A stretch of 64,000 nucleotides of DNA, taken from positions 62,001 through 126,000 of IMG/VR virus record IMGVR_UViG_3300023174_000033; one strand, written 5' to 3'. Positions 19,060-62,327 of the stretch are shown piece after piece. Numbering within the stretch: position 1 is the stretch's first letter; each line of letters opens with the position of its first letter. A model generated the notes under the pieces. That model made no database searches. It saw only the letters and a list, made by a program, of their open reading frames with translations, and had not been told where the DNA came from. A program made the translations under genes and the position numbers.

Positions 19060-19257
19060 AATTTTTTCTATCTTCTCCCTTCTCAATCTAAATAAATATT
19101 TCTCCAAGAATTTTTGTATTTCTTCATCAATTCTCAAAGTTATCACAGAATTGTCACGAGATTTATCCAAGAGTCCTCTTATAAACTTTTGGAACTCTTC
19201 CTCAAAAATTGGGTCACCACTCAATTTTTTATAATTTTCATGCCATAGGAATTTCAA
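19039..19257 (-). CDS. Small hypothetical protein with C-terminal RREKIEKIL motif
   Basis: 72 aa; overlaps the topoisomerase stop. Confidence 0.55.
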   Translation of the reverse strand: MKFLWHENYKKLSGDPIFEEEFQKFIRGLLDKSRDNSVITLRIDEEIQKFLEKYLFRLRREKIEKILGKKDI

Positions 19258-21092
19258 GTTTGTAAAAGTTCATTTTTTCTCAAATCGGAATCTTTCCCAA
19301 ACCAAACATTCAAATATTTTTTTGAACTTTCGTCGGTTGTAATCCTTACAAGTTTGGGATTATTTATTATTTCTTTGTATTCATCATCAATCAAGGCACC
19401 AAGACCCTTTTTATATTCAATTTCCCAATCTTTTACATTGATAGTCTCTACCCATTTATTGTATTCTTCTTGATTATAAAAAGAAATCTTCTTCTTATTC
19501 TTTAAATGCTTTGATACCACAATTGGAGTCTCCGCTTTAAATACCATCGGGTTTTCAAATAATTCTGGCCAGTACTTGTGAAAGAAATTTATCAATAAAC
19601 CCACAATTGAACTTCCATCATGGTCAGCATCACAATAAAAAAGAATTTTACCATATCTTAAAGTTCCAGGAACAGCCTTCTGTCCTAATTTCAATCCTAA
19701 AGCCCCCATTAAATTAACAACCTCATTATTTGAAACTAATTTTTGATTGTTAATTTCTAATGCATTTATGAATTTTCCTCTTAAAGAAAAAGCACCTTGA
19801 GTTTGTGGATCGCGATACTTTCTAAAAGCCGATGAAGCAGAGTCACCTTCAAATATTGAAAGTGAGCACTTCCACCTCTCACGACTTTTAGCATCAATTA
19901 ACTTTTCAACCTTTATCTTTGAAAGATTTTTATTCAATTCTCTTGCTAACTTATTTTCATCAGCGGATTTCTTTTTCTGTACCCAATCAAGGATTGAACT
20001 AATTATCTCGGATTTCAAAATTGACTTTATCATCTTTTCAGAAACTTCAAATGTGTATCCAAAATCTTTAACCTCTGTAATTAGTTTTTCTTTTGTTTGG
20101 GAAGAGAAACTTGGATTTACAACTGTTGAACAAATAAAAATCTGAATATGATTCTTCAACTCCGATGGTTTGATATCAACCTTGTGTTTCTTCTGAAAAA
20201 AATCACGAAGATTTGTGACTATTTGGTTCATCACGTAATCAACATGATTTCCACCATCGTAAGTTTCTGTTGAATTAACAAATGATATTTGTTGAAATCC
20301 CTCATCTGAATGAGCGACTCCTAAACTCCAAGATTTATCTTGATTTGTCTCAAAAAAATAATCCTCACGATAAAACTTGATGTAGTCCTCAAAAGACTTA
20401 ACATTTATTAACTCATCATTAAAGTAAATTTTAATTGCGGGATTACAACCAGCAATATCATATACTCGTTTCTTTATAACATCAAACATTTCAGAATTCA
20501 AACAATTGAGTCCGAATTTTTCATAATCTGGAATAAACTTAATTGATGTGTGATTAACCTTACTTTTTTTAATTTGAGGTTCTGTTTTTTTACCCATGTT
20601 ATCAGAAAAAATCTGAAAATAGTGGTTCTTACCATCACAAGTGGATATAATAAATTCTTTTGAATAAATGTTTGTTAGACTTGAGCCAACACCATTTGTA
20701 CCTGCCCAAGTTCTTGATTCAGAATCATCAAAGTTGGAACCAGCTTTAAGATTTGAGAATATCATTTCTGGTATCCATTGATTTTCTTCTTTATGCTTTA
20801 CGACAGGTATACCACCGTTATCCCAAACTTCAATTTGGTCATTTTTAATAGTAATCTTTATTGTGTTTAGTTTACTATCATCTCTTTTATGTTCATCAAC
20901 AGAGTTTGTGATGATTTCGTCAAATATCTTGAGAAGTCCAGGATTATAAGTAATTTCATTTGAAATCATCTTCCCATCATTAATAAGAAATTTCTTGGAT
21001 GTATGTGGTTTTATTGAACCAATATACATTGAAGGTCTTGACAAAACATGAGTTCTATCATCTAATTTCTTAAACTTTTTCTCTATGGACAT
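19254..21092 (-). CDS. Type IIA DNA topoisomerase ATPase+TOPRIM subunit (T4 gp39+gp60-like)
   Basis: RPSMYIGS, EIITNSVDE, DNGGIP, GTNGVG, FEGDSA, DADHDG, YKKGLG; likely start ATG 21092 (MSIEKK). Confidence 0.93.
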   Translation of the reverse strand: MSIEKKFKKLDDRTHVLSRPSMYIGSIKPHTSKKFLINDGKMISNEITYNPGLLKIFDEIITNSVDEHKRDDSKLNTIKITIKNDQIEVWDNGGIPVVKHKEENQWIPEMIFSNLKAGSNFDDSESRTWAGTNGVGSSLTNIYSKEFIISTCDGKNHYFQIFSDNMGKKTEPQIKKSKVNHTSIKFIPDYEKFGLNCLNSEMFDVIKKRVYDIAGCNPAIKIYFNDELINVKSFEDYIKFYREDYFFETNQDKSWSLGVAHSDEGFQQISFVNSTETYDGGNHVDYVMNQIVTNLRDFFQKKHKVDIKPSELKNHIQIFICSTVVNPSFSSQTKEKLITEVKDFGYTFEVSEKMIKSILKSEIISSILDWVQKKKSADENKLARELNKNLSKIKVEKLIDAKSRERWKCSLSIFEGDSASSAFRKYRDPQTQGAFSLRGKFINALEINNQKLVSNNEVVNLMGALGLKLGQKAVPGTLRYGKILFYCDADHDGSSIVGLLINFFHKYWPELFENPMVFKAETPIVVSKHLKNKKKISFYNQEEYNKWVETINVKDWEIEYKKGLGALIDDEYKEIINNPKLVRITTDESSKKYLNVWFGKDSDLRKNELLQT

Positions 21093-21162
21093 TTTTTGGT
21101 GAAATTTGTGATTATATATATCCCTCGATAACTTTTGTTTATTCACCAAATATATTGACAGT

Positions 21163-22506
21163 ATGACCAACGAAAAAACTATATCGGAATTCCTATCACA
21201 AGAATATAAAGATTTTTCTCTTTATACGATTGAAAATAGAGCAATACCATCAGTAATTGATGGATTCAAACCGACACACAGAAAGATAGTACACATTTCA
21301 AACGAGATTTGGAGAAATGGTGGAGAGAAACCTTTGAAAGTGTTTCAATTAGCAGGTAAAGTTGCATCAGACGCATTTTACCATCATGGAAATGCAAGTC
21401 TTGAGTCTGCAATCATCACAATGGCACAGAGTTTTAAGAACAATTTACCCCTACTTCAAGAAATAGGTCAATTTGGATCATTGAGGTCACCAGAACCCGC
21501 TGCTGCTAGATACATTGGAACAAAACTACACCCCAACTTTAAATTACTTTATAAGGACTTTGAATTACTAACCTATAAAGAAGAGGAGGGAGAAATAATT
21601 GAACCACACTTCTTTTTACCAATAGTTCCAACGGTTTTAATAAATGGTTCATCAGGTATAGCCGTTGGATTTTCCTCAAACATCTTGAATAGAAATCCAC
21701 TGGAGGTTTTAATAGCATGTGAGTCCGCATTGAAAGGAAAAAAGTTAATTGATATAAAACCATTCAATAACTACTTTTTTGGCACTTACACAAAAGATTT
21801 GGAAAATCCAAAAAAGTGGATTATTCGTGGTAAATTAACACAACAGAATACTTCAACTGTTAAGATAACTGAACTACCCCCATCAATGACTTTTGAAAAA
21901 TATGAAACACATCTTGACTTTCTTGTTGAAAGTAAATCAATAGTCTCATATGAAGATAATTCAAAAGACAAAATTGACTACACGATAAAGTTTACAAGAG
22001 AATCTTTATCACAGTTTTCAGAGGATAAGCTATATAAATTATTAAAACTTGAAGAAACCGAAACCGAAATATTCACAACGCTTGATGAACATGGCAAATT
22101 GAAAATATTTGAATCGGTGATTGATATAATCAACTATTTTGTTGAATTCCGATTGGAGTTTTATCACAAAAGAAAGGAGTTCCTACTTGACAAACTACAG
22201 AAAGAATTAAAATTGTTAAGTAATAAAGGTAAATTTATCAAAGCAATACTTGATAATAAAATTGAAATAAAAAATACTCCGAAATTGGAGATAATAAAAT
22301 CAATTGAATCTATGAATTTGGATAAAGTGGATGATAGTTATGACTACCTATTGAGAATGCCCCTTTGGTCATTAACCAAAGAAGTTTTTGATAAATTAAA
22401 AGAAGATTATAAAAACAAGAAATCCGAGCACGAAGAGCTTGAAAAGGTTGATCCTAAAACAATGTATCTTGATGATTTGTCCGTTTTGAAAAATAAGTTG
22501 AAGTGA
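21163..22506 (+). CDS. Type IIA DNA topoisomerase cleavage subunit (T4 gp52-like)
   Basis: RAIPSVIDGFKP, YHHG, catalytic AARYI, NGSSGIAVG. Confidence 0.93.
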   Translation: MTNEKTISEFLSQEYKDFSLYTIENRAIPSVIDGFKPTHRKIVHISNEIWRNGGEKPLKVFQLAGKVASDAFYHHGNASLESAIITMAQSFKNNLPLLQEIGQFGSLRSPEPAAARYIGTKLHPNFKLLYKDFELLTYKEEEGEIIEPHFFLPIVPTVLINGSSGIAVGFSSNILNRNPLEVLIACESALKGKKLIDIKPFNNYFFGTYTKDLENPKKWIIRGKLTQQNTSTVKITELPPSMTFEKYETHLDFLVESKSIVSYEDNSKDKIDYTIKFTRESLSQFSEDKLYKLLKLEETETEIFTTLDEHGKLKIFESVIDIINYFVEFRLEFYHKRKEFLLDKLQKELKLLSNKGKFIKAILDNKIEIKNTPKLEIIKSIESMNLDKVDDSYDYLLRMPLWSLTKEVFDKLKEDYKNKKSEHEELEKVDPKTMYLDDLSVLKNKLK

Positions 22507-23378: not shown

Positions 23379-24566
23379 ATGGAAGAATTAAAAGATACAA
23401 TTGAAATGACTGGAATTTACAAACCAAAAACAAAATTCATAGAATTCATCGGAGCAAAGGGGAATGTTAATTTCCTAGCACAATCTGCAACTATTGACGC
23501 TAAACAACTCTCTGGAATGTACTATGAAGATATCACATTAAAAATGACCATGTATGACGATGGCACGATTGGGTTGGACGAGTTAGATACAAATCATACT
23601 ACACAAGAAGAAAGGATTCGTTTGATTCAAATTATTGAGGATAAGACTCTTTCCACATTCAGAGATAGGTCGGTAATAAATGAGTTGATGTTCACTTCAA
23701 TTGAAAAAGTAAAGGATAAAAATGTTCCCTTATATCTCGCTGTTGATTATCAAAAACCAATTGACAAGTTGGGTTCGCTTCTTGATGATGAAGTTGAAAT
23801 TTCAGACGATGCTATGGATAATCTCAATGACCTATTGAATTCCTGGTTTGAAGATGAAGAATTTGCAAAAGAGGTTGAGGAAATGATTAATGAAGAGAAT
23901 AGTCAATCAGATGGAATTATTAATGATGAATTCATGCAAGATCATGATACAGTATCAACCTCTAATATTAATGATTCATTTTCAAAAATGAAGGAAGAGA
24001 AACTACTTGAACTGAAAAGGAAAAGGGATAAGACTGAAACGGAAATAAACAAACAAACTTTCCAATTGTCTACCACACAGAAACAACTAACCGAACTTGA
24101 ATCGGAGTTGAAACTATTGGAAGATAGAATTGAAAACCTACAACCCTCTCTTGAAAGTAATGGTCTCTATTTCTCCGTTTCTGAAAGACAAAATGAGCAA
24201 ATTAATCTTGACTCAAAAACCGAGGAATTAATTAGAAAGACTGTAACTAAAGTTAAATCAATCAATGCTGACGCATTTATGAGTCTTTTTAAAGATGGTG
24301 AGTTTCATATTTGTGTCGCAACTAAAAATGATACCGAATTTGAAAAAATTACCGATATTGAAAAATTAGACAAGGAAATTCTGGAAAACTTATCAAAGCT
24401 TGATTTATCTTTTGAGGATGGCAAATTTATCTATCATGGAGAACTTAACTGGGGAGATATTGTAAACAAAATGTGCAAGTTTGGATTCCAACAAGATCAT
24501 GAATTTGATTTGATTTGTTTCCCCAAATCAGAAACCGTTGAAAATGATAAAACATCAAAGTTCTGA
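23379..24566 (+). CDS. Hypothetical coiled-coil protein
   Basis: 395 aa; TATATTTG element at 23367. Confidence 0.65.
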   Translation: MEELKDTIEMTGIYKPKTKFIEFIGAKGNVNFLAQSATIDAKQLSGMYYEDITLKMTMYDDGTIGLDELDTNHTTQEERIRLIQIIEDKTLSTFRDRSVINELMFTSIEKVKDKNVPLYLAVDYQKPIDKLGSLLDDEVEISDDAMDNLNDLLNSWFEDEEFAKEVEEMINEENSQSDGIINDEFMQDHDTVSTSNINDSFSKMKEEKLLELKRKRDKTETEINKQTFQLSTTQKQLTELESELKLLEDRIENLQPSLESNGLYFSVSERQNEQINLDSKTEELIRKTVTKVKSINADAFMSLFKDGEFHICVATKNDTEFEKITDIEKLDKEILENLSKLDLSFEDGKFIYHGELNWGDIVNKMCKFGFQQDHEFDLICFPKSETVENDKTSKF

Positions 24567-36646: not shown

Positions 36647-39600
36647 TTATTTGTATAATATTGTACCTGTTGTGGATGAGGAGAATGTTACCCCAAACGA
36701 ATTAACATCATTGTGAATTATACTAATTGGATTTATTACACTGTTATTAGTATCTAGTATCTGAACGATCGGGAAATATCCTAAGTTGTGTTGGACAAGG
36801 TATTCCGTACCACTGTTGAGTCCTGTGCCATCCAATGAATAACTACATCCAACTAGACTCGGTAACCAAGTTAATTGACCAATACCGTTTACTCCAATTG
36901 CAAAACTCGCAGATCCTCTAACATAATTCAGATTGACCCAACTATTTCCTATGGTGATACTGTTTGACGCACCATACTCAACACTGTTGCTTTCCAAGTG
37001 TATGTAAGGACCACTACCAGCTGTTGAACCGTCAATTAAATCAGATGCGGATACTTCAATTTTCGCCTCAAATGAAGGTGGATCAATATGAGAACCTCCA
37101 ATTATGTATTTACTTCTAATCTTAACTCTTTCCTCAACATCAACATTCGATATTGGGGCTTGGTAGAAATCCGATCTAGAATTATTAATACCAACCCCAG
37201 CTAATCCACCCGATACAAAATTTTCCCTACTTGAGTAAACTGCTGGATATAATTCGTTTGTGGTGTGGTCGTATTTGCTAGCACTTGGGTTAAATCCAAT
37301 AAGACCAGATGATTCAAGTACAAATGCGTATTCACTATTAGCCAAAGTCGCGCCTTTTATGTATCCATCTGTCGTTGAGTTGGAAATTTTAATTACATAA
37401 TCACCATCGTAAGACCATGAAGCGGTATTTCCAATTGTTAGAGTTTGGTCAAATGTGTAGATTGGAGCTGGTCCTTGTGGACCTGTGTCACCTTGATCGC
37501 CTTGAGGTCCCATCTCACCTTGTTCACCTTGTGGGCCCATCTCGCCTTGGTCACCTTGTGGGCCCATCTCGCCTTGGTCACCCTGTGGCCCCATTTCGCC
37601 TTGGTCACCCTGTGGCCCCATCTCACCTTGGTCACCCTGTGGCCCCATCTCACCTTGGTCACCCTGTGGCCCCATCTCACCTTGGTCACCCTGTGGCCCC
37701 ATCTCACCTTGGTCACCCTGTGGCCCCATCTCGCCTTGGTCACCCTGTGGCCCCATCTCACCTTGGTCACCCTGTGGCCCCATCTCACCTTGGTCACCCT
37801 GTGGCCCCATCTCACCTTGGTCACCCTGTGGCCCCATCTCACCTTGGTCACCCTGTGGCCCCATCTCACCTTGGAATCCTTGAGGACCAGTTACTCCTTG
37901 TACACCCTGGACACCCTGTAGACCCTGTGGACCAGTTATTCCTTGAACACCTTGGAATCCTTGTGGGCCAATCATACCTTGATGCCCTTGTGGGCCGAAA
38001 TCACCTTGGAATCCTTGTGGACCAGTAACACCTTGGAAACCTTGTGGACCGGTTGATCCCTGTGGACCAGATAGCCCTTGAAGACCTTGTGGACCAGTCA
38101 TACCTTGGAAACCTTGAGGACCGGTATCTCCTTGATATCCTTGTGGGCCCGTATTACCAAATGGCATGAAAGTGAAATTATAAATACTGTTAGGATAGAA
38201 TTGACCATTTGAGACAACAGGAGAGGAAAGACTCAACCCATAAACATTATTACTCTGTATTAGATTAACACCATAAACTGGGTAAATACCAACATTACTA
38301 GCTGTCAAAGCATCGGATACCTGTATCCATGTATTAATACCCTTATCAACAAATGTTTTTAGTGAATTAAACCAACCAGAGTAGTTTACCCCGTTGACAT
38401 CAGTTTTGTGAATTTTCAGATAATCATTCAGAGCGAAATTTGCATCTTCAATATCAAACTTACCAGTAGCAACACTGCCATTATCTAAACTCTCACATCT
38501 CCACTGTACCACAGTTTGTACTAAAGAAGTAACGGTTCCTTGTGGTCCTTCCAAACCTTGGAATCCCTGTGGACCCATATCACCCTGTGGACCACTTACA
38601 CCTTGGAAACCTTGTGGACCAGTCTCACCCTGTAATCCTTGTGGACCACTATAACCTTGAGGGCCAGTCATACCTTGTGGACCAGTCTCACCCTGTAATC
38701 CTTGTGGACCACTATAACCTTGAGGGCCAGTTACACCCTGTAATCCCTGTGGGCCAATAATACCCTGAAAACCTTGAGGGCCAGTTTCACCCTGTGACCC
38801 TTGAGGCCCAGACAACCCTTGAACCCCCTGTGGACCAGTATCACCTTGATTACCTTGGGGACCACTGTAACCCTGTGGACCACTGTAACCCTGTGGACCA
38901 AAATCACCTTGGAATCCTTGCGGACCTGTAATTCCTTGAACACCAGTTGATCCAGTTGATCCAACCGAACCATTAGCCACCCAAGTTACGTTATAAAGTT
39001 GCTCAGCAGCGAAAGATCCACTTGAAACAACAGCGGTTGAATCCACTTTAACAGAGTAGGTTGTGCCGTTGCCGGTCACACCAGTTACTCTATATAGCCC
39101 TGTATTACTTGGAGTTAAAGCATCGTAAATTTGTAGATAACTAGTGTTTTCATTTTGAACAAATATTCTAAGTTGATCAAACCATAATGAGTAATCTACA
39201 CTTTGTATATCTTGTTTATGGAAATTAAATTCTGAATTATTAGCAAATGTATTATTTTCAGAACTGAAATAATTTGGGTTATTTAATAGAGGATTGAAAC
39301 CTTTATACTTCCACTGGACAATTGTTTGCACTAATGACACAACCGAACCTTGGTCACCTTTGTATCCTTGTGGACCTGTTTCGCCCTGTGGACCAGATAA
39401 TCCCTGTAATCCTTGTGGGCCAGTATTACCTTGGAATCCTTGTGGGCCAGTATTACCTTGAACACCTTGAAAACCTTGAGGACCAATATTACCTTGATTA
39501 CCTTGTGGACCAGTCATTCCTTGATTACCTTGTGGACCAGTCATTCCTTGGAAACCTTGTGGACCAGTCATTCCTTGGAAACCTTGTGGACCAGTTTCAC

Positions 39601-42600
39601 CCTGTGACCCAGTATTTCCCTGTGAACCTTGAACGCCTTGGAAACCTTGTGGACCAGTCATTCCTTGATTACCTTGTGGACCAGTATTGCCTTGCAAACC
39701 TTGTGGACCAGATAAACCTTGAGGGCCAGTCACACCTTGCAAACCTTGTGGACCAGATAAACCTTGAGGACCAGTCACACCTTGCAAACCTTGTGGACCA
39801 GATAAACCTTGAGGACCAGTTCTTCCGAATGGTATCCAAGTAACATTGAAAACACTGGTTGGATTTAGAGTTCCGTTACCAACGATTTTATTCCCAACGT
39901 TAATAGTGTATTTAGGATCCGTGTAAGATAAACTACTAACTGGAAATAAACCAGTGTTACTTACTGTTAGCGAATCGTAAACTTGTATATAAGCTAAACT
40001 TCCACCGTCTACAAATCCTTTTAATTGGTCAAACCAATCGTTATAATCAACACCATTTATATCAAATTTATTGAAAACAAACTGTGTTGGTGGTGATGTA
40101 GTGAAGTTCGAACTGTTTGATTCAAATCTTCCATTCGGAAGTGATCCACCTATCAATCCGTCATATCTCCACTGCACAATTGTTTGCACCACCGAAACAA
40201 CTACACCCTGTGGTCCGGTATCACCTTGTAGTCCTTGATTACCCTGTGGGCCACTGAATCCTTGTGGACCAGTTACACCTTGATATCCTTGTGGACCAAA
40301 TTTTCCTTGTGGTCCTGTATCACCTTGTAATCCTTGTGGACCAGATAATCCTTGTGGACCTGTCTCCCCTTGGAATCCTTGCGGACCGGTGTTACCCTGA
40401 AAACCCTGTGGACCAGATAGACCCTGAAGACCTTGTGGGCCACTGAATCCTTGTGGACCGGTGTCACCTTGATACCCCTGTGGACCCGTATTACCTTGTA
40501 GACCTTGTGGGCCGGTGTTACCCTGGAATCCTTGAGGACCTGTATCACCTTGATAACCTTGAGGACCCGTATTACCTTGTAGACCTTGCGCGCCGGTGTT
40601 ACCCTGGAATCCTTGTGGACCAGTCATACCTTGTAACCCTTGGGGACCAGTCATACCTTGTAACCCTTGTGGGCCGGTGTCACCTTGATAACCTTGTGGA
40701 CCACTATATCCTTGCGGGCCAGTCTCACCTTGGAAACCTTGTGGACCAGTCTCTCCCTGAACGCCAGTTGAACCGGTGCCCCCAACTGAACCATTAGCAA
40801 CCCATGTTACGTTGTATAGTTGTTCAGTCGCAAAACTACCATTTGAAACAACTGCTGTAGAATCAACAGATACAGAATAAGTTGTCCCGTTGCCGGTCAC
40901 ACCAGTTACTCTATATAGCCCTGTATTACTTGGAGTTAAAGCATCGTAAATTTGTAGATAACTAGTATTTTGATTCTCAATGAATATTCTTAATTGTTCA
41001 AACCAAAGAGAATAGTCAACACTTTGTATATCTTGTTTATGGAAATTAAATTCGTTATTACTACCAAATGCAGGATTTTGTGAACTGAAATAATTTGGGA
41101 ATGATCCTAATGGATTCGTACCTTTGTATTTCCACTGAACAATTGTTTGCACTAATGACACAACCGAACCTTGGTCACCTTTGTATCCTTGTGGACCAGA
41201 ATATCCTTGTGGACCAGATAAACCTTGCACACCTTGTGGACCTGTCTCACCTTGGAAACCTTGTGGACCTGTCTCACCTTGGAAACCTTGAGGGCCAGAT
41301 AAACCTTGAAGTCCCTGAGGCCCGGTCATACCTTGGAAACCCTGTGGGCCAGTTGAACCTTGATATCCTTGTGTGCCAGTGTTTCCTTGTGGACCTGTAT
41401 CACCTTGCAAACCTTGTGGACCAGTTGAACCTTGAAACCCCTGTGGACCAGATAATCCCTGTAAACCTTGTGGACCAGATAAACCTTGTAGTCCTTGTGG
41501 ACCGGTATCACCTTGGAAACCTTGTGGGCCGAAATCACCTTGGAAACCTTGTGGGCCTGTAACTCCTTGTAGTCCCTGGGAGCCACTGTATCCTTGTGGA
41601 CCAGTTATTCCTTGGAAACCTTGGGGTCCTGTTTCACCTTGATATCCTTGAGGACCTGTATTACCTTGAGATCCTGTGTTGCCCTGTGGACCTGTATTAC
41701 CTTGGAATCCTTGAGGACCTGTATTACCTTGGAATCCTTGAGGACCTGTGTCGCCTTGATAACCTTGTGGACCACTAAAACCCTGTGGACCAGTGTCACC
41801 TTGTGGACCAGTTGGTCCGGTAGCACCTATGGAACCATTTACGAACCAACCAATGTTATATATGTTGTTACCTGTAAACGTGCCACTACCAACTATAGCT
41901 GGAACGTCTGTAAAGATATAGTAGCTATGGGTACTAAATACTTGAGAAGGACTTGTCTGTGTAGCAGCAAGAACTTTGTAGAATCCAGTTATACTCTGAG
42001 TTGTTGAATCATAGATTTGTAAGTATGAAGGATTTTCATTATTAACAAACTTTTGCAATTGATCAAACCAGAGTGAATAACTAACTGAGTTGATATCCCT
42101 AAATTCAAATCTGAAATAAGGGTTAGTTGGTAAATCAATACTACTAGTTTCAAAATAACCTTGGGTTAGGCCGCCACCCAATAAACCACCATACTTATAT
42201 TGTATTATGGTTTGGACCATGGAAACAACTAATCCGTCAACTCCTTGTGGGCCGGTATCACCTTGGAATCCTTGTGGGCCAAAGTCTCCTTGGAATCCTT
42301 GAGGTCCACTAAATCCTTGGGTGCCTTGTGGGCCGGTATCGCCTTGTGAACCTTGTGGGCCAGATAATCCTTGTGGACCAGTGTTTCCTTGATATCCTTG
42401 TGGACCAGTGTTTCCTTGATATCCTTGTGGGCCAGATAATCCTTGATGTCCCTGTGGACCAGTGTCTCCCTGTGATCCTTGTGGACCAGTATCTCCTTGA
42501 AAACCTTGAGGACCAGTGTCTCCCTGATAACCCTGCGGACCACTTTCGCCTTGAAAACCTTGAGGACCAGTGTCTCCCTGATAACCCTGCGGACCGGTAT

Positions 42601-45196
42601 CACCTTGATAACCCTGCGGACCACTTTCTCCTTGATAACCCTGCGGACCAGTATCACCTTGATAACCCTGCGGACCAGTATTACCTTGGAATCCCTGTGG
42701 ACCACTTTCTCCTTGAAAACCTTGCGGACCAGTATCACCCTGATATCCTTGCGGACCGGTATCTCCCTGTAGTCCCTGTGGGCCAGTATCACCTTGATAT
42801 CCCTGTGCCCCCTGTGGGCCAGTATCACCTTGATATCCTTGCGGACCGGTATCACCTTGAAATCCTTGATCACCTTGTGGGCCAGTATCACCTTGTGATC
42901 CCTGTGGGCCAGTATCACCTTGATAACCCTGTGGGCCAGTATCTCCTTGAAATCCTTGATCACCTTGTGGGCCAGTATCACCTTGATATCCTTGAGGACC
43001 GGTATCTCCCTGAACGCCTTGAGGACCAGTCTCACCTTGGAAACCTTGAGGACCAGTCTCACCTTGAACACCAGTTGAACCAGTACCACCAAATGATCCA
43101 TTAGCAACCCAAGTAACATTATAAACTTGTTCTGTTGCGAAACTTCCATTTGACACTAATGCGGTTGAGTCAACCGAAATTGAATAAGTTGAACTTCCAT
43201 ATGTAACACCAGTCACTCGGTATAGACCAGTGTTACTGGATGTTAAAGCATCATATACTTGTAAATAACTTACATTTTGACTATCTACGAAAGTTAAGAG
43301 TTGTTGAAACCAAACTGAATAATCTATGGATTGATTATCTAGTTTATTGAAAATAAATTCACTATTACTAGCAAAAGTAGGTTGATCGGAAGTAAAATAT
43401 TTTGATACCGGTTCAGTTGCTGAATTTAGACCTTGGTATTTCCACTGAACAACAGTTTGAACTAATGAAACAACAACCCCCTGTGGACCTTGTTCACCTT
43501 GAGTTCCGGAAAAACCTTGAGGACCGGATAATCCTTGAACACCCTGTGGGCCAATTTCCCCTTGTGGGCCACTTTCTCCTTGAAAACCTTGCGGACCAGT
43601 ATCACCTTGATGCCCTTGCGGACCAGTATCACCCTGTAGTCCCTGTGGACCTGTTTCACCTTGATACCCCTGTGCCCCCTGTGGACCTGTTTCACCCTGG
43701 TAACCTTGTGGGCCAGAAATACCTTGCACACCTTGTGGACCAGTTTCTCCTTGGAATCCCTGTGGGCCGGTATCACCTTGATATCCCTGTGGACCTGATA
43801 AACCTTGTAGTCCTTGTGGACCCGTCAAACCTTGTGGACCAGTTAAACCTTGATAACCCTGTGGGCCAGAAAGTCCTTGTGGACCCGTGAAACCTTGTGG
43901 GCCTTGTGGACCGGTGTCACCTTGATAACCTTGAACTCCGGTTTCTCCTTGCCAACCTTGTGGACCAGAAACACCTTGAGGACCTGTAGTGCCTTGGAAA
44001 CCTTGAACACCAGTACTGCCCTGCCATCCTTGTGGACCAGAAAGTCCTTGTGGACCAGTAACACCCTGGAAACCTTGAACACCAGTACTACCCTGCCATC
44101 CTTGTGGACCAGATAACCCCTGTAATCCTTGTGGACCAGTAAAACCTTGATATCCTTGCACACCAGTGTTTCCCTGCCATCCTTGTGGACCAGATAAACC
44201 CTGGAATCCTTGTGGACCAGTCATACCTTGATATCCTTGTGGACCAGATAACCCCTGTAAACCTTGTGGACCTGTATCACCTTGCAAACCTTGTGGGCCG
44301 GTTCTACCTTGGAATCCCTGTGGACCAGTTCTACCTTGATAACCTTGAGGCCCAGATAAACCTTGAAAACCCTGTGGGCCACCAGAACCTTGAGAACCAG
44401 TGGCACCACCACCGGTTATAATCTTACCACTGAATTGTTGGTCAAAAGTAACAACGTAAGTATCTGTACTAATATAATTAACAGAATATGAAGCTGGTTG
44501 AATGTTTACGTTACCATTGGAGGTATCAACTGCTTGTACTAGTGGATATCCATTGAAACTATGTGTAACAGTAACTTGAGTTTTATTAGAAAAGTCTGTT
44601 ATAAAATTTGAGACAGCATCAAGACCTCTCGGACCTTGAACACCTTGTGGTCCACTCAAACCCTGAAAACCAGTATTGCCTCTACCTGGGTTTGTAGCCC
44701 AACCAATTGTATAGGTTCTCCCATCTACAAATACACCACCAACTGCAATTGGTTGCACATTTAGATCAAACCCCGTAAATCCATCATCTACAATATTTGT
44801 TACTTGAAAAAGAGCTCTGTTTAGAGGGTCTTGATCTTCAACTATATTTAAATAACTTATTTGTTCACGGTCAACAAAAACTTTCAATTGTTGTAACCAA
44901 GGGGAATAATCCACACCATAAAGGTCAATATATTGAATACTTAAAGAAGTAATAAATTCAGGATCGTCATTATTTGCAACAAATTTTTGTATGGTTGTAA
45001 GATTACCACCAGCTAGATATTTCCATTTTGATGAAGGTGAAGATAATTGCACTACCACGCCCTGTGGTCCTGTTTCGCCCTTTGGTGGTAAATCTACCGG
45101 ATTCCCAAATCCATCGTAGAATTCATTTCCGTTTATAACTTGTACTAATCGTTGATATGTACCTGATACGGTTGTTCCGGTTAAATTATATGACAT
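36647..45196 (-). CDS. Giant collagen-like fibre protein with seven interspersed globular repeat domains
   Basis: 2849 aa; long (Gly-X-Y)n runs dominated by GPQG; repeated ~125-aa '[13 protein letters not shown]...YNVTW' domains; TAATATATAG upstream. Confidence 0.9.
37500..37875 (-). repeat. Near-perfect 27-bp tandem repeat (about 13 units, GPQGDQGEM)
   Basis: Unit CCTTGGTCACCCTGTGGCCCCATCTCA on the + strand repeated with few substitutions. Confidence 0.9.
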
Positions 45197-46315: not shown

Positions 46316-46560
46316 TGAAACATCTGGTTTATTTTAATCAACTAAACGAAAACCTACCAAGACAATCAACAGTTAATCAACTCAAGAGGTTGAGGAAATT
46401 AACAAAGGGAATAGATATCGGTGATAGAATTTCCGATATGACTAAACAAGGAGCAAATATATTGCACATAACTAATCCAGTGGATACTGGGGTTGAATCA
46501 ATTGAACATTTTTGGAAACATAATGACCCCGTAAAATTGTCAACCACAAAATCAAAATAA
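46315..46560 (+). CDS. Small hypothetical protein (MKHLVYFNQLNE N-terminus)
   Basis: 81 aa; translationally coupled on both sides. Confidence 0.6.
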   Translation: MKHLVYFNQLNENLPRQSTVNQLKRLRKLTKGIDIGDRISDMTKQGANILHITNPVDTGVESIEHFWKHNDPVKLSTTKSK

Positions 46561-47114
46561 TGGGGAAAATAAAAACTTACTCCGAATTCATGTTTATTTC
46601 CGAAGATAAATCAGGAACAAATTATGAATACGGATGTCTGATGTTAAATCTAAATTTCCAAAACTGGAAAATTTTCACCTCAAATATTGATAAAGATGAT
46701 TTATACGAATCGGAAAGTGAAAGATATGGAATTGAAACCGAACCCCATGTCACTATATTATATGGAATACACAAATCAGTTGATGATGATGTTGTTTATG
46801 CACTTTTTTCCGATTTGAAAAAGAATGATTTTGATTTAAAAGTCAGTGGGATTGACTGTTTCTTCAATAAAGATTATGATGTACTGAAAATGAACATACT
46901 TTCCGACAAATTGAGTGAGTTAAACAAACTTGCTAAAAGATTACCACACACATCTGATTATCCTGATTATAAACCACACATTACAATAGCCTATCTACAA
47001 AAGGGTAAAGCTAGTCAGTACGCAAACACAAACTTTAATATAAATTTGGATAACATAAATAAAATAGTTTATTCTAAATCAAATGGCCAAAAGATTAGCA
47101 TACCTGTTATTTAA
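46560..47114 (+). CDS. 2H phosphoesterase, T4 57B/Acb1-like
   Basis: EPHVTILYG and HTSDYPDYKPHITIAY, resembling the 57B-type second HxT motif. Confidence 0.75.
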   Translation: MGKIKTYSEFMFISEDKSGTNYEYGCLMLNLNFQNWKIFTSNIDKDDLYESESERYGIETEPHVTILYGIHKSVDDDVVYALFSDLKKNDFDLKVSGIDCFFNKDYDVLKMNILSDKLSELNKLAKRLPHTSDYPDYKPHITIAYLQKGKASQYANTNFNINLDNINKIVYSKSNGQKISIPVI

Positions 47115-57450: not shown

Positions 57451-58142
57451 ATTGAAACTTGCAACCTCTCATTAAGTGATAGCTTTCTTCTTATTTCCCA
57501 TTTATGCTTATCATCCTCAAATTTATTGTAGTAATTTTGGTCATTTTGGTCTGGATTTCTTTTACCATTTGACCAATGAAAATGCTCAAATACAAAATCT
57601 TTATCTTGCAACCTTTCATCAATAATTAATTTCAATTGTTCAGCATTCAAATAGTGTTCAGCATCGGAACACAAATGATTATAAGCCGGATTATAAATTA
57701 TTTTATTCATTTTGAGCAAAGCCGAATAAGTCATAATTGGAATACTAAATACAGGTTCTGCCATATTACTAAAATCAAGAGCTTGGTACCCATCATTGAC
57801 CATCAAACAACCTTCCCTACCTTTTAACTTTTCAGATATATACTTGTCCCAATTATTTGGAGGTAAGAAATCATCAGAAGCAAAAATCACAACATCATCC
57901 GAGTTTCCCTCAACTCTAGAACTTAAATAATATGATGGATAAGCAACCCCTATTCTATCAGGTCTATCAGTTATAACAACATCTAAACTTGGTAAAGTTT
58001 TTAAGATTGAATCTTTCTGTGTTTGTGTGTTTACACAGACATATGTTTTTATCGTTTCATTTTTTGAGGATTTGTCCATCCAAGTTTTGAAAGAAGATAG
58101 AAAAACCTCGGGTCTTATCGTACACCATAATAAATGTATCAT
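57447..58142 (-). CDS. Putative glycosyltransferase (GT-A fold)
   Basis: TIRP, ASDDF.P..WD, Y.H..SD.E, FEH.H. Confidence 0.65.
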   Translation of the reverse strand: MIHLLWCTIRPEVFLSSFKTWMDKSSKNETIKTYVCVNTQTQKDSILKTLPSLDVVITDRPDRIGVAYPSYYLSSRVEGNSDDVVIFASDDFLPPNNWDKYISEKLKGREGCLMVNDGYQALDFSNMAEPVFSIPIMTYSALLKMNKIIYNPAYNHLCSDAEHYLNAEQLKLIIDERLQDKDFVFEHFHWSNGKRNPDQNDQNYYNKFEDDKHKWEIRRKLSLNERLQVSI

Positions 58143-58912
58143 ATTGCCATATTTTTCATTTTATCAACATTACCAATGGCATCCTTTGATTGGACTGTTA
58201 ATTCGTAAAGTTGTTCTTTATTTAGGGTTAAATATCTGTTATATAAATGTAAATTTCTGAAATATAGTTCTTGATTTATATTGCCACGAATATGCCACAA
58301 ATGATAACATTTATCTTTAGCTTGAAAATGGTTTAAATAATTTTTTACTTTTATTGATTGGTAATCATCTTCAGCTCCCCATCCCCAAAAATCCTCGTTC
58401 CATCCACAGATTTTCTCTAAAGCTTGCTTTTGGAATATTATTATCCCACCACAAAAAGGAACTTTTTGGTGGTCAGTTTCTCCTCTACCTGGCCTTACAA
58501 TTGAATATAATTGGTTTATATCACCAGTTTTCCAATATTGTTCTGTTTCATTATATTCCAAATCTACCACCGATGAATATGGGTTTATACATTCATATTC
58601 GGAGACCAAATTAATTGAATTCATTAAAGACTCTTTATTCATAACCAAATCCGCATCTCCGAAAACTATAACGTCAGATTGAGCACTCTTCCAAGCCACA
58701 TTGAAACACCAAGCTTTATTAAAGGGATGTTCATTTTGAAGGAATATGTGTTTAAATTTTACACCCAAATCAACAGTTGAGAGGTAAGAATTCTTATCAC
58801 TTTCCACTACGATTATTTCACAATCAAGTTCCGAAACCCAACCCAAAATTTTTTGTAGATTATGAATTCTGTCTGGTGAATTTCTATAAGCTATTATATA
58901 AGAAAATTTCAT
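58139..58912 (-). CDS. Glycosyltransferase, GT7/GT2 galactosyltransferase-like
   Basis: IIAYR, FNKAW..N, DAD, GWNEDFWGWGAEDD, HLWH. Confidence 0.85.
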   Translation of the reverse strand: MKFSYIIAYRNSPDRIHNLQKILGWVSELDCEIIVVESDKNSYLSTVDLGVKFKHIFLQNEHPFNKAWCFNVAWKSAQSDVIVFGDADLVMNKESLMNSINLVSEYECINPYSSVVDLEYNETEQYWKTGDINQLYSIVRPGRGETDHQKVPFCGGIIIFQKQALEKICGWNEDFWGWGAEDDYQSIKVKNYLNHFQAKDKCYHLWHIRGNINQELYFRNLHLYNRYLTLNKEQLYELTVQSKDAIGNVDKMKNMAI

Positions 58913-60081
58913 TTTTTTGATTTTGACTTTTTAATTTTAACAACCATTTCTTCCTTTTCCTTATTATAATCAAGTAGAATTTTACTCCCCTTTGGTGGAT
59001 TTGACTTGATTATTTCTTCTGTGATTGGATCCTCAATGTACTTTTGTATTGCTCTCTTCAATGGTCTAGCGCCATATTCAGCATCGTATCCTTTTTCTGT
59101 GACATAGTCTTTAGCCGCATCTGTCAAATCAAAATCAAAATCTAAAGATGCGATCCTTTCTATCATTTTTTTCAACTCCACGTTGATTATCTTTTGAATA
59201 TCTTCTTTTTCCAAAGAATTAAAAGTTATCACTTCATCAATTCTGTTTAGAAATTCAGGCGCGAATGTTTTTTTCAATTCTTTCTCAATTACTTCTTTTG
59301 AGTCAGAACCCTTATTTGACTCTTTTGATTTTGTAGTAAACCCTATACCGGTTCCGAAATCTTTTAATTGTCTAGAACCAGTATTTGAGGTCATTATAAT
59401 TATAGTATTCTTAAAATCAACTTTTCTACCCATTGAGTCTGTTAGCTGACCATCATCTAAAACTTGTAGTAACATATTAAAGACTTCTGGGTGAGCTTTC
59501 TCAATTTCATCAAGTAAAATTACAGAATATGGACGCCTTCTTACTTTTTCAGTTAGTTGACCACCCTCGTCATGTCCGACATATCCTGGAGGAGCTCCAA
59601 CCAATCTTGAAGTAGCAAACTTCTCCATGAATTCACTCATGTCAATTCTTATAAGTGATTCAGAAGAATCAAATAAATGTTCAGCAAGTACCTTGGCTAG
59701 TTGAGTATTGTGACTCAATAAACCATTTGTATAATACCTTCTGTCAGAATTTCCATCTAACTCAAGATCAAACATCACTTCATTATAATTCAACTCTTCA
59801 ACAGAATCAACTTCTTCAATTCCATTTTCAGCAATTATTCTATCACCGACTTTTAAGTCTTTCACAAAAACTTCTTCCAAGTTTTCTCTGAAAAGAATAT
59901 GATTATCAGCACAATAAAGTATTGTTTTATTTTTAGTAGTTAGTCTAAATACATCATACTTTACTGTTTGATGTAAATATTTTATATCTACAAATCCTGA
60001 ATCAGTCAATACTTCAAAATCATCAACTTTGTAGGAATCTGTTATTTTTTTATCATATAATGATAATTCGCTTGCTTTCAT
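58909..60081 (-). CDS. clpC: C-intein fused to the C-terminal half of a ClpC-like AAA+ ATPase (split gene)
   Basis: ATG 60081. 125-aa intein fragment, then TQLAK..., RIDMSEF, SRLVGAPPGYVG, LLDEIEKAHP, GIGF loop, PEFLNRID, GARPLKRAI. Confidence 0.88.
   Translation of the reverse strand: MKASELSLYDKKITDSYKVDDFEVLTDSGFVDIKYLHQTVKYDVFRLTTKNKTILYCADNHILFRENLEEVFVKDLKVGDRIIAENGIEEVDSVEELNYNEVMFDLELDGNSDRRYYTNGLLSHNTQLAKVLAEHLFDSSESLIRIDMSEFMEKFATSRLVGAPPGYVGHDEGGQLTEKVRRRPYSVILLDEIEKAHPEVFNMLLQVLDDGQLTDSMGRKVDFKNTIIIMTSNTGSRQLKDFGTGIGFTTKSKESNKGSDSKEVIEKELKKTFAPEFLNRIDEVITFNSLEKEDIQKIINVELKKMIERIASLDFDFDLTDAAKDYVTEKGYDAEYGARPLKRAIQKYIEDPITEEIIKSNPPKGSKILLDYNKEKEEMVVKIKKSKSKK
59707..60081 (-). mobile_element. 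Split intein C-fragment (no block A, no endonuclease)
   Basis: VLTDSGF, block B CADNHIL, block F MFDLEL, block G YYTNGLLSHN followed by +1 Thr. No N-terminal Cys/Ser block A. Confidence 0.85.
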
Positions 60082-60154
60082 AAAATTAAAAAAGATTTTC
60101 AAGGGTTTTTATCAAACTAATTGAATTTGTTTAGAAAAAAATTTGAAAATAAAG

Positions 60155-60225
60155 AGGTCCGCCCTGGAGTCGAACCAGGCTAGATGGTGTTGCAAACCAT
60201 CACATAACCGCTCTGACATCGGACC
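60155..60225 (-). tRNA. trnC: tRNA-Cys(GCA)
   Basis: GGTCCGATGTCAGAGCGGTTATGTGATGGTTTGCAACACCATCTAGCCTGGTTCGACTCCAGGGCGGACCT; U73; A7-G66 mismatch; no encoded CCA. Confidence 0.88.
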
Positions 60226-60393
60226 CTATTTAAGAATCTCTTCTATTTTTTCATCCCTCTGAAGTTGTGTGTAATAATCTTCAGATTGAAGATCAAAAAC
60301 ATAGCATTCATACATACGAATTAAATCACTATAGGATTCAAGTGCAATGTGTTTAGACTCTTGTAGATAATTTAGGTATTCTTCAGAATTCAT
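60226..60393 (-). CDS. 55-aa hypothetical protein with C-terminal RDEKIEEIL motif
   Basis: Below the ORF-track cutoff. MNSEEYLNYL...QRDEKIEEILK*; TATCTTTG element directly upstream. Confidence 0.6.
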   Translation of the reverse strand: MNSEEYLNYLQESKHIALESYSDLIRMYECYVFDLQSEDYYTQLQRDEKIEEILK

Positions 60394-60447
60394 AATACAA
60401 AGATAGGAATTATTAGTTAGAATGTGAGATATTTCTCAAATCTTTAT

Positions 60448-61074
60448 TCAAAGATTTGAGAAATATGTTGGTCTCTTCACAACTGGTAATACTTTATTTA
60501 CCCAAACTTCATGATTGTCACTTAATTTACCAATTGAGGAATATCCGTAATCTTCAAGATAAGAAAAATCATTTGTTTTATTATTCCAAGTATAGTCATG
60601 GTACTCAAGTAAAATAACTCCGAATTTTACGAAGTCAAAATCAATACCACTTAAAACCTCATGCTCATAACCTTCAACATCAAGAGAAAAGAAATCAATA
60701 TTCCTCATATTGTGTTTTTTCAAAAGAGTGTCTAAAATAGTCACTGGCCAAATTGTATAATTTTCTTGGTCAATATCATGAATACCAGGAATATTGTACA
60801 TATGGTCATACTCATGTTTATAAGCTTTGATGGTTTCTTCCTTATAATCTCTACCAACAAGTGCGTAATTCTCAACTATTGATTGGGGTCTCAATATTTT
60901 ATAATCCTCATTATGGTCCATTCTTGGCTCAACTAACAATCCGGACCATCCGTTTTGTTCTAGCCTGTAAGTATTATTTTGATCTGTTGGGTGACTTGAA
61001 CCGGTCTCTAAATAGACTCCTTTGAAGTTTTTAAAGAAGTCTAATATGAATCGGTCTATATTGTGTTGACTCAT
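60448..61074 (-). CDS. FkbM-family SAM-dependent methyltransferase
   Basis: YLETGS, NTY.LE..GWSGLLVEP, IDFFSLDVEGYE. Confidence 0.85.
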   Translation of the reverse strand: MSQHNIDRFILDFFKNFKGVYLETGSSHPTDQNNTYRLEQNGWSGLLVEPRMDHNEDYKILRPQSIVENYALVGRDYKEETIKAYKHEYDHMYNIPGIHDIDQENYTIWPVTILDTLLKKHNMRNIDFFSLDVEGYEHEVLSGIDFDFVKFGVILLEYHDYTWNNKTNDFSYLEDYGYSSIGKLSDNHEVWVNKVLPVVKRPTYFSNL

Positions 61075-61126
61075 AATTTTATTTTTTTTTGTGTGTATTT
61101 TAAGGAACTCATTTAGAGTCCCTTTG

Positions 61127-61198
61127 TAGTCCCGCCAGGAATCGAACCTGGAAGAATTGCTTAGAAGGCAACCAGTATATCCGTTTACTTACAGGACC
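61127..61198 (-). tRNA. trnR: tRNA-Arg(UCU)
   Basis: GGTCCTGTAAGTAAACGGATATACTGGTTGCCTTCTAAGCAATTCTTCCAGGTTCGATTCCTGGCGGGACTA; no encoded CCA. Confidence 0.88.
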
Positions 61199-61210
61199 AT
61201 ATACTTTATA

Positions 61211-61588
61211 TCAAAGACTCTGAAAAAAGTTCTTCAATTTAATCCTTTCATCCCTATAATCGTCCCAGGTACTGCCTTTGCCCAAATCAACCATATGTTT
61301 CTGTTTCTTATGACAAACATAATACTTTTCATTTTCAAATCCAAGTTCAAAGTCAGAATTTTCCCAATATTCATCAATTAACTTATTAATCATTTTCTGA
61401 ATAGATTCTTCTGTTGTGACTTTAATATGGAAAGGATCGATGTAGAATGGGAAATCTCCCAATTCATCTTCATCAAACATTTTATCACCTTCTTTATCAA
61501 GGGATTTTTTCATTTTCTTTTGAAGAACTTTAATCCTTTCAAGGAGTTCAATTTTTTCGTCAATGCAATCAACTTCAATTTGTATCAT
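61211..61588 (-). CDS. Hypothetical protein
   Basis: 125 aa; ends RDERIKLKNFFQSL. Confidence 0.55.
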   Translation of the reverse strand: MIQIEVDCIDEKIELLERIKVLQKKMKKSLDKEGDKMFDEDELGDFPFYIDPFHIKVTTEESIQKMINKLIDEYWENSDFELGFENEKYYVCHKKQKHMVDLGKGSTWDDYRDERIKLKNFFQSL

Positions 61589-61857
61589 GATAATAAATTT
61601 TTAATTTGTTCGTCTCTGTTTAATTGAATAAAATAAGGGTCCTCTTTCATAAATATCTCAATGTTAGATCTGAATTGTCTAGACAAAGGTTTGTATTTGT
61701 GTAAATAAATTTGTAGTTTTTCATTGGGATATAATTTGTGGAAGGTTTTCAAAAATTCTTCATCACTTTCGTCCCATCTACCGAGAGATTTAACACGGTA
61801 TTCACTCCACATTTTATTTGTACCCTGAAACACATGACCTTTGTATAGACCAATCAT
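61585..61857 (-). CDS. Small hypothetical protein with C-terminal RDEQIKNLL motif
   Basis: 90 aa; coupled to greA. Confidence 0.55.
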   Translation of the reverse strand: MIGLYKGHVFQGTNKMWSEYRVKSLGRWDESDEEFLKTFHKLYPNEKLQIYLHKYKPLSRQFRSNIEIFMKEDPYFIQLNRDEQIKNLLS

Positions 61858-62327
61858 TACTTGACTCGGATTTCCAAAATCCCAAGTTCCATTTTACCAA
61901 TAGGAACTTCAGCAATTACTTTATCACCAACTCTTTTACCCATCAGAGCAGCCCCAATCGGACTGAGGTGTGAAATTTTTCCACTCTTGATATCAATTTC
62001 ATTCTCGGGCACAATCCGATATTCAATTGTAACACCACTTTTGGTATTCTTAAATTTAACCCATGTAAGTAGTTGAACTGTACCATCATCAATAATACCC
62101 TCTAAAATTTCAGCATCTGCCAATTTTTGTGAAAGATTATTAATTTTTCTATTCAAATCATCAAGGGCTGTTTTAGCAGCATCATATTCAGCATTTTCAG
62201 ATAAGTCACCCTTATCTTTTGCTTCTGCTAAATTTTGAATATGTTCCCTAAGTTGAGGACCCCTCATATCTCTTAGTTCTTGTTCTAGTTTTTGAAACCC
62301 TTCACGGGTCATAGGTATTCTTGCCAT
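61857..62327 (-). CDS. greA: Transcription elongation factor GreA
   Basis: MTREG..KL..EL, GDLSENAEYDAAK, IS..SPIG.AL.GK.VGD. Confidence 0.95.
   Translation of the reverse strand: MARIPMTREGFQKLEQELRDMRGPQLREHIQNLAEAKDKGDLSENAEYDAAKTALDDLNRKINNLSQKLADAEILEGIIDDGTVQLLTWVKFKNTKSGVTIEYRIVPENEIDIKSGKISHLSPIGAALMGKRVGDKVIAEVPIGKMELGILEIRVK

Follow-up and report, generated by a model that had tools for sequence, protein, structure and literature searches.

A ClpC-like ATPase gene of a huge phage is very probably completed in trans by an atypically split intein

Is a phage Clp gene that opens inside an intein and lacks the first half of its ATPase a decayed fragment, or one half of a working gene? 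The question is raised by an open reading frame (ORF) on the minus strand at positions 58909-60081 of a 64,000-nucleotide stretch, here called the window, which corresponds to bases 62001-126000 of IMGVR_UViG_3300023174_000033 (Ga0214921_10000006), a 464,605-bp phage contig. An earlier reading of the window by its letters (the sequence-only reading) had predicted a distant gene for the N-terminal part of the protein, ending in GVGK-C followed by 15-40 amino acids (aa) and a stop. Such a gene exists on the same contig, with GVGK|C followed by 30 aa and a stop. The ORF in the window (the C-half) is very probably the C-terminal half of a naturally, atypically split class-1 intein, made up of an N-terminal piece (IntN) of 31 aa and a C-terminal piece (IntC) of 125 aa, inserted at GVGK|T in the Walker A motif of the second AAA+ module (D2) of a ClpC-like ATPase. 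Its partner, the N-half, lies about 47.7 kb away.

A Clp gene that starts within its Walker A motif

The C-half and its immediate surroundings consist of the following features, given in window coordinates:

58909-60081, minus strand: IntC-Clp ORF (C-half), opening at an ATG that is also the start in the JGI gene calls
59707..60081, minus strand: IntC, the 125-aa C-terminal intein fragment with its own ATG; block B CADNH, block F MFDLEL...RRYYTNG, block G LLSHN
58912..59706, minus strand: C-extein, 265 aa from the Walker A Thr (TQLAK...), with Walker B, GIGF loop and D2-small
58909-58911, minus strand: stop codon of the C-half
60082..60153, minus strand: spacer of 72 nucleotides (nt) between the tRNA-Cys and the IntC ATG, read directly from the sequence
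60154/60155-60225, minus strand: tRNA-Cys (GCA), directly upstream of the C-half, found by ARAGORN and by Rfam (tRNA, 38.6 bits, gathering score 29)
58139..58912, minus strand: family 2 glycosyltransferase (GT2) downstream of the C-half, from the ORF list

The intein blocks described from the letters alone (B, CADNH; F, MFDLEL; G, SHN), followed by TQLAK in an ORF of 125 + 265 aa, are all present. For residues 1-125 the Pfam Intein_splicing match is weak (E 0.004) and extends only over model positions 25-93 of 155; since it begins at position 25, roughly the first 24 model positions are absent from IntC. Residues 126-390 match AAA_2 positions 16-166 (E 7e-59) and ClpB_D2-small (E 2e-23), and because the AAA_2 match opens only at profile position 16, the start of Walker A is missing from the C-half. 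The best solved-structure match of the C-extein is Bacillus subtilis ClpC, residues 552-805 (E 2e-91). Its first residue aligns to T552, the Thr of the D2 GKT, and so the ORF does resume right after the Walker A Lys, as had been proposed. The C-extein is 73-75% identical to the intein-free Clp proteins of two huge phages, LR745206 and LR756502.

The remainder of the ATPase is not in the window. The spacer of 72 nt, where about 70 had been estimated, holds no N-extein or IntN coding sequence, and the tRNA-Cys marks the place where the ancestral N-half is absent. An in-frame TTG lies 5' of the C-half ATG, at 60102. When two full-length homologues were searched against the window with tblastn they matched the C-half alone, which upholds the earlier statement that the missing half is not encoded there. 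The only other G..G.GK motif in the window belongs to a RecA-like ORF at its end.

The missing half on the same contig

The partner was sought in IMG/VR with a degenerate junction pattern, FLGxxGVGK-Cys, which returned 53 loci. One of the 53 is on the contig of the window itself (L181, contig 166,855-172,329) and carries the following gene:

Contig 169,769-171,184 (L181:2915-4330), plus strand: N-half gene, 440 aa of Clp N-half, 31-aa IntN and stop

The start of this gene is probably at L181:2915. A separate search for related loci with the N-half of LR745206, based on exact 8-mer seeds, did not have the partner among the matches listed. The gene product reads ...FLFLGPTGVGK|CVTKDTSITLRNKKTGEIYTCTIFDLLQQIS-stop, so that IntN consists of Cys1 and 30 further residues and opens with CVTKDT. 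Its domains are AAA (D1), AAA_lid_9, UVR (E 6e-6) and positions 1-33 of AAA_2, and the N-extein is 76-78% identical to intact homologues. The 77-aa ORF downstream of IntN has no family match. On the contig the C-half occupies 120,912-122,081 on the minus strand; the two halves are therefore on opposite strands, transcribed divergently, with the 47.7 kb measured from start to start. In the source annotations they are called as separate proteins, and both the C-half and the full-length N-half are unnamed there.

The intein-free contiguous homologues, from the uncultured huge phages LR745206 (635 kb) and LR756502 (642 kb), are 701 and 707 aa long and read GPTGVGKTQLAK. When the two exteins were joined in silico by script, the resulting protein of 440 + 265 = 705 aa aligned to these homologues with 74-75% identity and no gap at the junction, where GPTGVGK-TQLAK is identical to both.

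Across the N-half and the C-half there are two AAA+ modules and a short middle region that holds a UVR motif, an architecture of the ClpC type. The D2 loop GTGIGF, placed opposite NKYVGF in the alignment to B. subtilis ClpC, is predicted to be a ClpP-docking loop of the (V/I/L)GF type. The view that the protein is ClpC-like rather than ClpB is thus borne out by the UVR motif, the VGF-type loop and the best match in the Protein Data Bank (PDB). No Clp_N repeat domain was matched by Pfam in the N-half, nor in the homologues of 701-707 aa, and the scores against the NCBIfam ClpB and ClpA equivalogs are below their cut-offs; for these reasons we name the protein ClpC-like and not ClpC. The scanned ORFs of the window included no ClpP.

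Class and fold of the intein

IntN and IntC are encoded by separate ORFs on one contig, each with its own stop and start, as expected of a naturally split intein. The split point is between blocks A and B, leaving the short IntN and the long IntC. All residues of class-1 splicing are present: Cys1, the block-B His, the terminal His-Asn (H124, N125) and Thr+1. In an alignment of 23 IntC sequences of the family, Cys57, Ala58, Asp59, His61, the RRY-TN motif and the Leu-Ser-His-Asn end are invariant. Block B is CADNH, and the Thr position of the usual TxxH is Ala in all 23 members while the His is invariant.

Taken together, the 156 aa of IntN and IntC can be aligned over their full length with other split pairs and with a contiguous mini-intein of 173 aa in a related locus (L174). 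Searched against the PDB with phmmer, IntC matches CatC, from the consensus atypically split intein, best as a single sequence (6dsl_B, E 7.6e-5) and also matches gp41-1. The profile of the 23 IntC sequences retrieves only intein structures (gp41-1, 2.9e-9; CatC, 1.8e-8; VidaL, 4.4e-6), and the intein signal is far above chance expectation. An AlphaFold model of the contiguous L174 relative (mean predicted local distance difference test score, pLDDT, 84.8) was built from alignment A3; a MAFFT alignment, A2, was dropped as it set the 31-aa IntN fragments on block B. The model matches intein folds only (VidaL, RadA, gp41-1 and Cat), with VidaL at the top (E 1.6e-8) and a template modelling (TM) score of 0.76 to the RadA intein. 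Its low-confidence residues, 40-49, fall within the linker where the split members are cut.

Two other accounts of the element were rejected. The string EVLTDSGF in IntC was considered as a degenerate block A without Cys1, as in a class 2 or 3 intein, but the real block A, C-x-x-x-D/E-T, is carried by IntN. Splicing at the RNA level is not the explanation either, since an Rfam scan of 58000-62000 gave only two tRNAs and no group I or II intron.

A family of split Clp inteins in phages

The comparison with homologous phages that had been proposed, for contiguous against split alleles, turned up both. About 45 of the 53 IMG/VR junction loci consist of a Clp N-half followed by an IntN of 28-38 aa and a stop, and L174 has the contiguous 173-aa mini-intein of the split family at this junction. 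In five further loci (L022/L189/L190/L204/L207) the same GVGK|C...HN|T site is occupied by another, contiguous intein, about 345 aa long, whose large central insert may be LAGLIDADG-like.

At loci with enough flanking sequence, the IntC-Clp gene is usually 0-2.7 kb downstream of the N-half on the same strand. At some of them a homing-endonuclease-like ORF is between the halves (PHROG HNH/homing endonuclease, E 4e-31; DUF559, Vsr-like, E 6e-8), and L010, L017 and L016 show the order N-half with IntN, Vsr/DUF559- or HNH-like ORF, IntC with C-half. In L167 (1-7566) the two Clp halves are convergent, on opposite strands and separated by about 5 kb, with the N-half and an endonuclease-like ORF on the minus strand and the C-half on the plus strand.

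Three loci hold Clp genes in three pieces: L209:1773-7468 (plus strand), L203:2134-9020 (plus strand) and L177:184-5391 (minus strand). In these, one atypically split intein of the same family is inserted in the Walker A of D1 and a second in that of D2 (GVGK|C ... HN|T), and Vsr/DUF559-like ORFs occupy the gaps. Such genes would be natural tandem trans-splicing systems requiring orthogonal pairs.

The same IntC family was also seen at other GK|T P-loops in IMG/VR phages (L224:1763-2920, plus strand; L226; L227:9192-9900, plus strand; L217/L222/L229/L230), where it is hosted by a TerL-like terminase, a DnaB-like helicase and the D1 domain of Clp. Walker A sites in general seem to be the homing targets of this family. 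In GenBank, IntC homologues (40-45% identity) occur in 309 phage records, and all 30 of the 30 listed are terminase large-subunit genes or unannotated ORFs.

Among 185,579 representative cellular genomes, two Clp genes carry an intein at the D2 P-loop site. Both are contiguous and both are from bacteria of the candidate phyla radiation, a Candidatus Falkowbacteria (L325) and a Candidatus Berkelbacteria (L372). The scan of bacterial and archaeal genomes gave 79 pattern matches, most of them by chance, and none is an atypically split Clp. Two archaeal metagenome-assembled genomes (L342 and L391) have inteins after a FxGxNGVGK P-loop; our guess is that the host protein is SRP/FtsY-like.

Conservation and alternative explanations

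The C-half could be the non-functional leftover of an intein-containing clp gene that was destroyed by a rearrangement. The halves are not adjacent, no homing endonuclease is left at either locus, and the arrangement is unlike that of most relatives, all of which would fit decay. However, both ORFs are full length, free of frameshifts and internal stops, and keep every splice residue; both exteins are close to intact homologues, at the identities given above; and the stop of the C-half overlaps the start of the next gene, as in an expressed operon. The N-half with its 31-aa IntN tail is also retained in two diverged relatives from other metagenomes, L166 and L182, which share synteny with the N-half locus (65-91% identity between the proteins) and have no C-half within 2.7-3.7 kb downstream of the N-half. 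In comparisons of these three loci the nonsynonymous divergence (dN) of the N-extein is 0.055-0.07 and that of IntN is 0.16-0.30, far below the synonymous divergence (dS), which is saturated in most, and the length of IntN and the position of its stop are identical in all three. The syntenic relatives, the low dN and the fixed stop lead us to conclude that the separated arrangement is old and that the IntN tail is under purifying selection. The sequence-only reading had held that a locus without any partner gene would be a decayed fragment; the partner is present on the same contig. We regard decay as very improbable.

Split-intein halves bind tightly by themselves. The two proteins might thus associate through their intein fragments without covalent splicing, or act independently, the N-half as a one-ring D1 ATPase and the C-half as a ClpP-docking module, and the replacement of the block-B Thr by Ala could be taken in favor of this. 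Against it, all of 23 family members keep Cys1, the His of block B, the His-Asn end and Thr+1, a constancy to be expected only where the chemistry is in use, and without splicing 156 aa would separate the P-loop Lys from its Thr. The characterized members of the group matched in the PDB, Cat and VidaL, do splice (PMC11766414). We regard the non-splicing alternative as quite improbable. As the contig is metagenomic, it could in principle be chimeric or falsely inverted, with the halves truly adjacent. This explanation has a negligible probability: two ENA scaffolds of different samples (L398 and L399) contain the exact C-half with the upstream methyltransferase gene, a 55-aa ORF and the tRNA-Cys, one of them differing at 14 positions over 5.2 kb, and the exact N-half with its stop and the 77-aa ORF is present in three further sequences, an ENA contig of 295,671 bp, a Logan contig and an ENA scaffold. 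The context of the N-half is shared by L166 and L182 as well. The misassembly that had been named as a possible refutation was not seen, as independent JGI, ENA and Logan assemblies give both loci with the same flanks.

Several points weigh against trans-splicing of a split intein as the account of this locus. The ADNH of block B departs from TxxH, although it is probably tolerated because it is invariant across the family. Trans-splicing is a prediction from the genes, and a second, intact clp may be present elsewhere on the contig, as 64 kb plus about 5.5 kb of its 464.6 kb were covered. No close relative of the C-half was found in another phage, and the conservation of the separated arrangement was assessed on the N-half side only; a metagenome scan with the C-half gave, among the matches listed, hits to the C-extein only and no close relatives of IntC. 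Finally, no promoter motif is shared upstream of the two halves.

Proposed mechanism and origin

If the intein is active, two precursors of about 53 kDa and 45 kDa (our own estimate) would associate through IntN and IntC, which together would complete the HINT fold. Cys1 would form a thioester, Thr+1 would attack it and Asn125 would cyclize, releasing the 705-aa subunit of a ClpC-like hexamer with an intact D2 P-loop. Neither half alone is predicted to have a complete D2 ATP site.

As to its origin, the split is most likely due to a free-standing homing-endonuclease gene that broke a mini-intein, giving a 'fractured gene', a state that relatives still show. A later rearrangement of the genome would have separated the halves, a distance that trans-splicing tolerates. 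A single inversion is compatible with the orientation of the halves; synteny with the intein-free huge phages is not kept beyond clp, and the rearrangement could for this reason not be reconstructed.

Genomic context and expression

The C-half is the head of a same-strand run of glycosyltransferase genes, with Pfam matches to Glycos_transf_2, Glyco_transf_7C and FucT/GT10 in the genes that follow it, and the ATG of the GT2 gene overlaps the Clp stop (ATGA, 58909-58912). Upstream, a hairpin with a perfect 11-bp stem (CTCAAATCTTT-GAATA-AAGATTTGAG, window 60427-60468) overlaps the end of an FkbM-type methyltransferase gene. It may terminate the methyltransferase transcript, in which case the 55-aa ORF, the tRNA-Cys and IntC-Clp could form their own unit.

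At the N-half locus, two diverged phages share a conserved non-coding element (L181:2820-2858 and L166:8620-8657) that contains GTATCATGATCTTGCAT and has an internal ATCATGAT palindrome followed by a T-run; its distance upstream of the start of the N-half is 60-95 nt. A further copy with two mismatches is at window 23934-23953 on the minus strand, inside a plus-strand ORF, and the element was not found upstream of the C-half. Scans for sigma-70 promoters and terminators were uninformative in this AT-rich DNA.

The window also encodes a full-length Hsp70/DnaK homologue (11950-13848, plus strand; Pfam HSP70, E 3e-252), and its presence together with the Clp ATPase suggests that the phage carries its own chaperone set. 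The two transcription units, an N-half behind the conserved motif and a C-half heading the glycosyltransferase operon behind the tRNA, might act as an AND-gate or timer for ClpC alongside the phage Hsp70. We consider this unlikely; if it were true, assembly of the active unfoldase would depend on co-expression of two separately regulated loci.

Elsewhere in the window there are topoisomerase II subunits, GyrB-like and GyrA/ParC-like (19254-22506), a GreA/GreB-type transcript cleavage factor (61857-62327, minus strand) and, from 63940 onward, the RecA-like ORF with its Walker A. These genes represent cell-like information processing that is typical of huge phages. A 2849-aa ORF (36647-45196, minus strand) has at least 20 matches to collagen triple-helix repeats (E 7e-232), and a 184-aa ORF (46560-47114, plus strand) matches anti-CBASS Acb1 and the 2'-5' RNA ligase superfamily (E 2e-10).

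Significance and comparison with known systems

A seemingly truncated Clp gene in a huge phage thus appears to be half of a working gene, of a kind that annotation pipelines would miss. No paper was found that describes an intein in ClpA, ClpB, ClpC, ClpX or Hsp100 ATPases, and to this extent the claim of an unprecedented Hsp100 case stands; it does not stand as a claim for a single phage, with about 45 IMG/VR phage loci sharing the same Clp split. Insertion in a P-loop, a split with a short IntN, Thr+1 and distant halves are each already known, which qualifies the earlier suggestion of a new ligation tool with a Thr+1 nucleophile; the intein is a member of the known family with short IntN. 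An Hsp100 unfoldase joins the hosts of split inteins. The most interest attaches to how large the natural family is and to the Clp genes in three pieces: the analysis brings to light about 45 natural split inteins that combine a short IntN with Cys1 and Thr+1, and pairs of this sort are wanted for ligating peptides to proteins and for assembling several fragments. A contiguous mini-intein, adjacent halves that may or may not have an endonuclease gene between them, and halves 48 kb apart form a series, which illustrates how a true trans-gene can arise from a fractured gene.

By its sequence, the intein can be placed in the atypically split group of AceL-TerL, Cat and VidaL. The known members AceL-TerL, GOS-TerL, Cat and VidaL have an IntN of 25-37 aa and an IntC of 104-115 aa (PMC11766414), and the terminase hosts of AceL-TerL, GOS-TerL and Cat agree with the GenBank matches of IntC (PMC11766414, PMC10189870). 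The Clp intein shares with AceL-TerL and Cat the Cys1, the short IntN (31 aa here), the long IntC (125 aa here) and the sequence family. In contrast to the phage terminase inteins, its host is the D2 P-loop of a ClpC-like Hsp100 protein, its +1 residue is Thr where theirs is Cys, and about 48 kb separate its halves, which are on opposite strands.

In the 'fractured genes' of Dassa et al. (2009), phage genes are interrupted by a split intein, and a free-standing homing-endonuclease gene separates the parts, one exception with another break point being noted (PMC2677866). Clp is not among the eight host enzyme types of that study (PMC2677866). The phage context is the same here, and the relatives L010, L016 and L017 match the layout exactly. 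Unlike in the fractured genes, the halves in this genome are non-adjacent and flanked by no endonuclease gene, with the tRNA-Cys and the 77-aa ORF in its place, and the break is between blocks A and B rather than at the canonical site of the endonuclease domain.

The split intein of cyanobacterial DnaE likewise joins the products of two distant genes on one replicon into one essential-type enzyme by protein trans-splicing. Its split is canonical, with an IntN of about 100-123 aa and an IntC of about 36 aa, and its host is a cellular polymerase. The Clp intein resembles it in having distant halves on one replicon and differs in the atypical split, the phage host and the ClpC-like ATPase. The contiguous Clp D2 inteins (the five loci with inteins of about 345 aa, L325 and L372) share its insertion point, GVGK|C...HN|T, and differ in being one-piece, cis-splicing elements of another subfamily (CHGKGT...).

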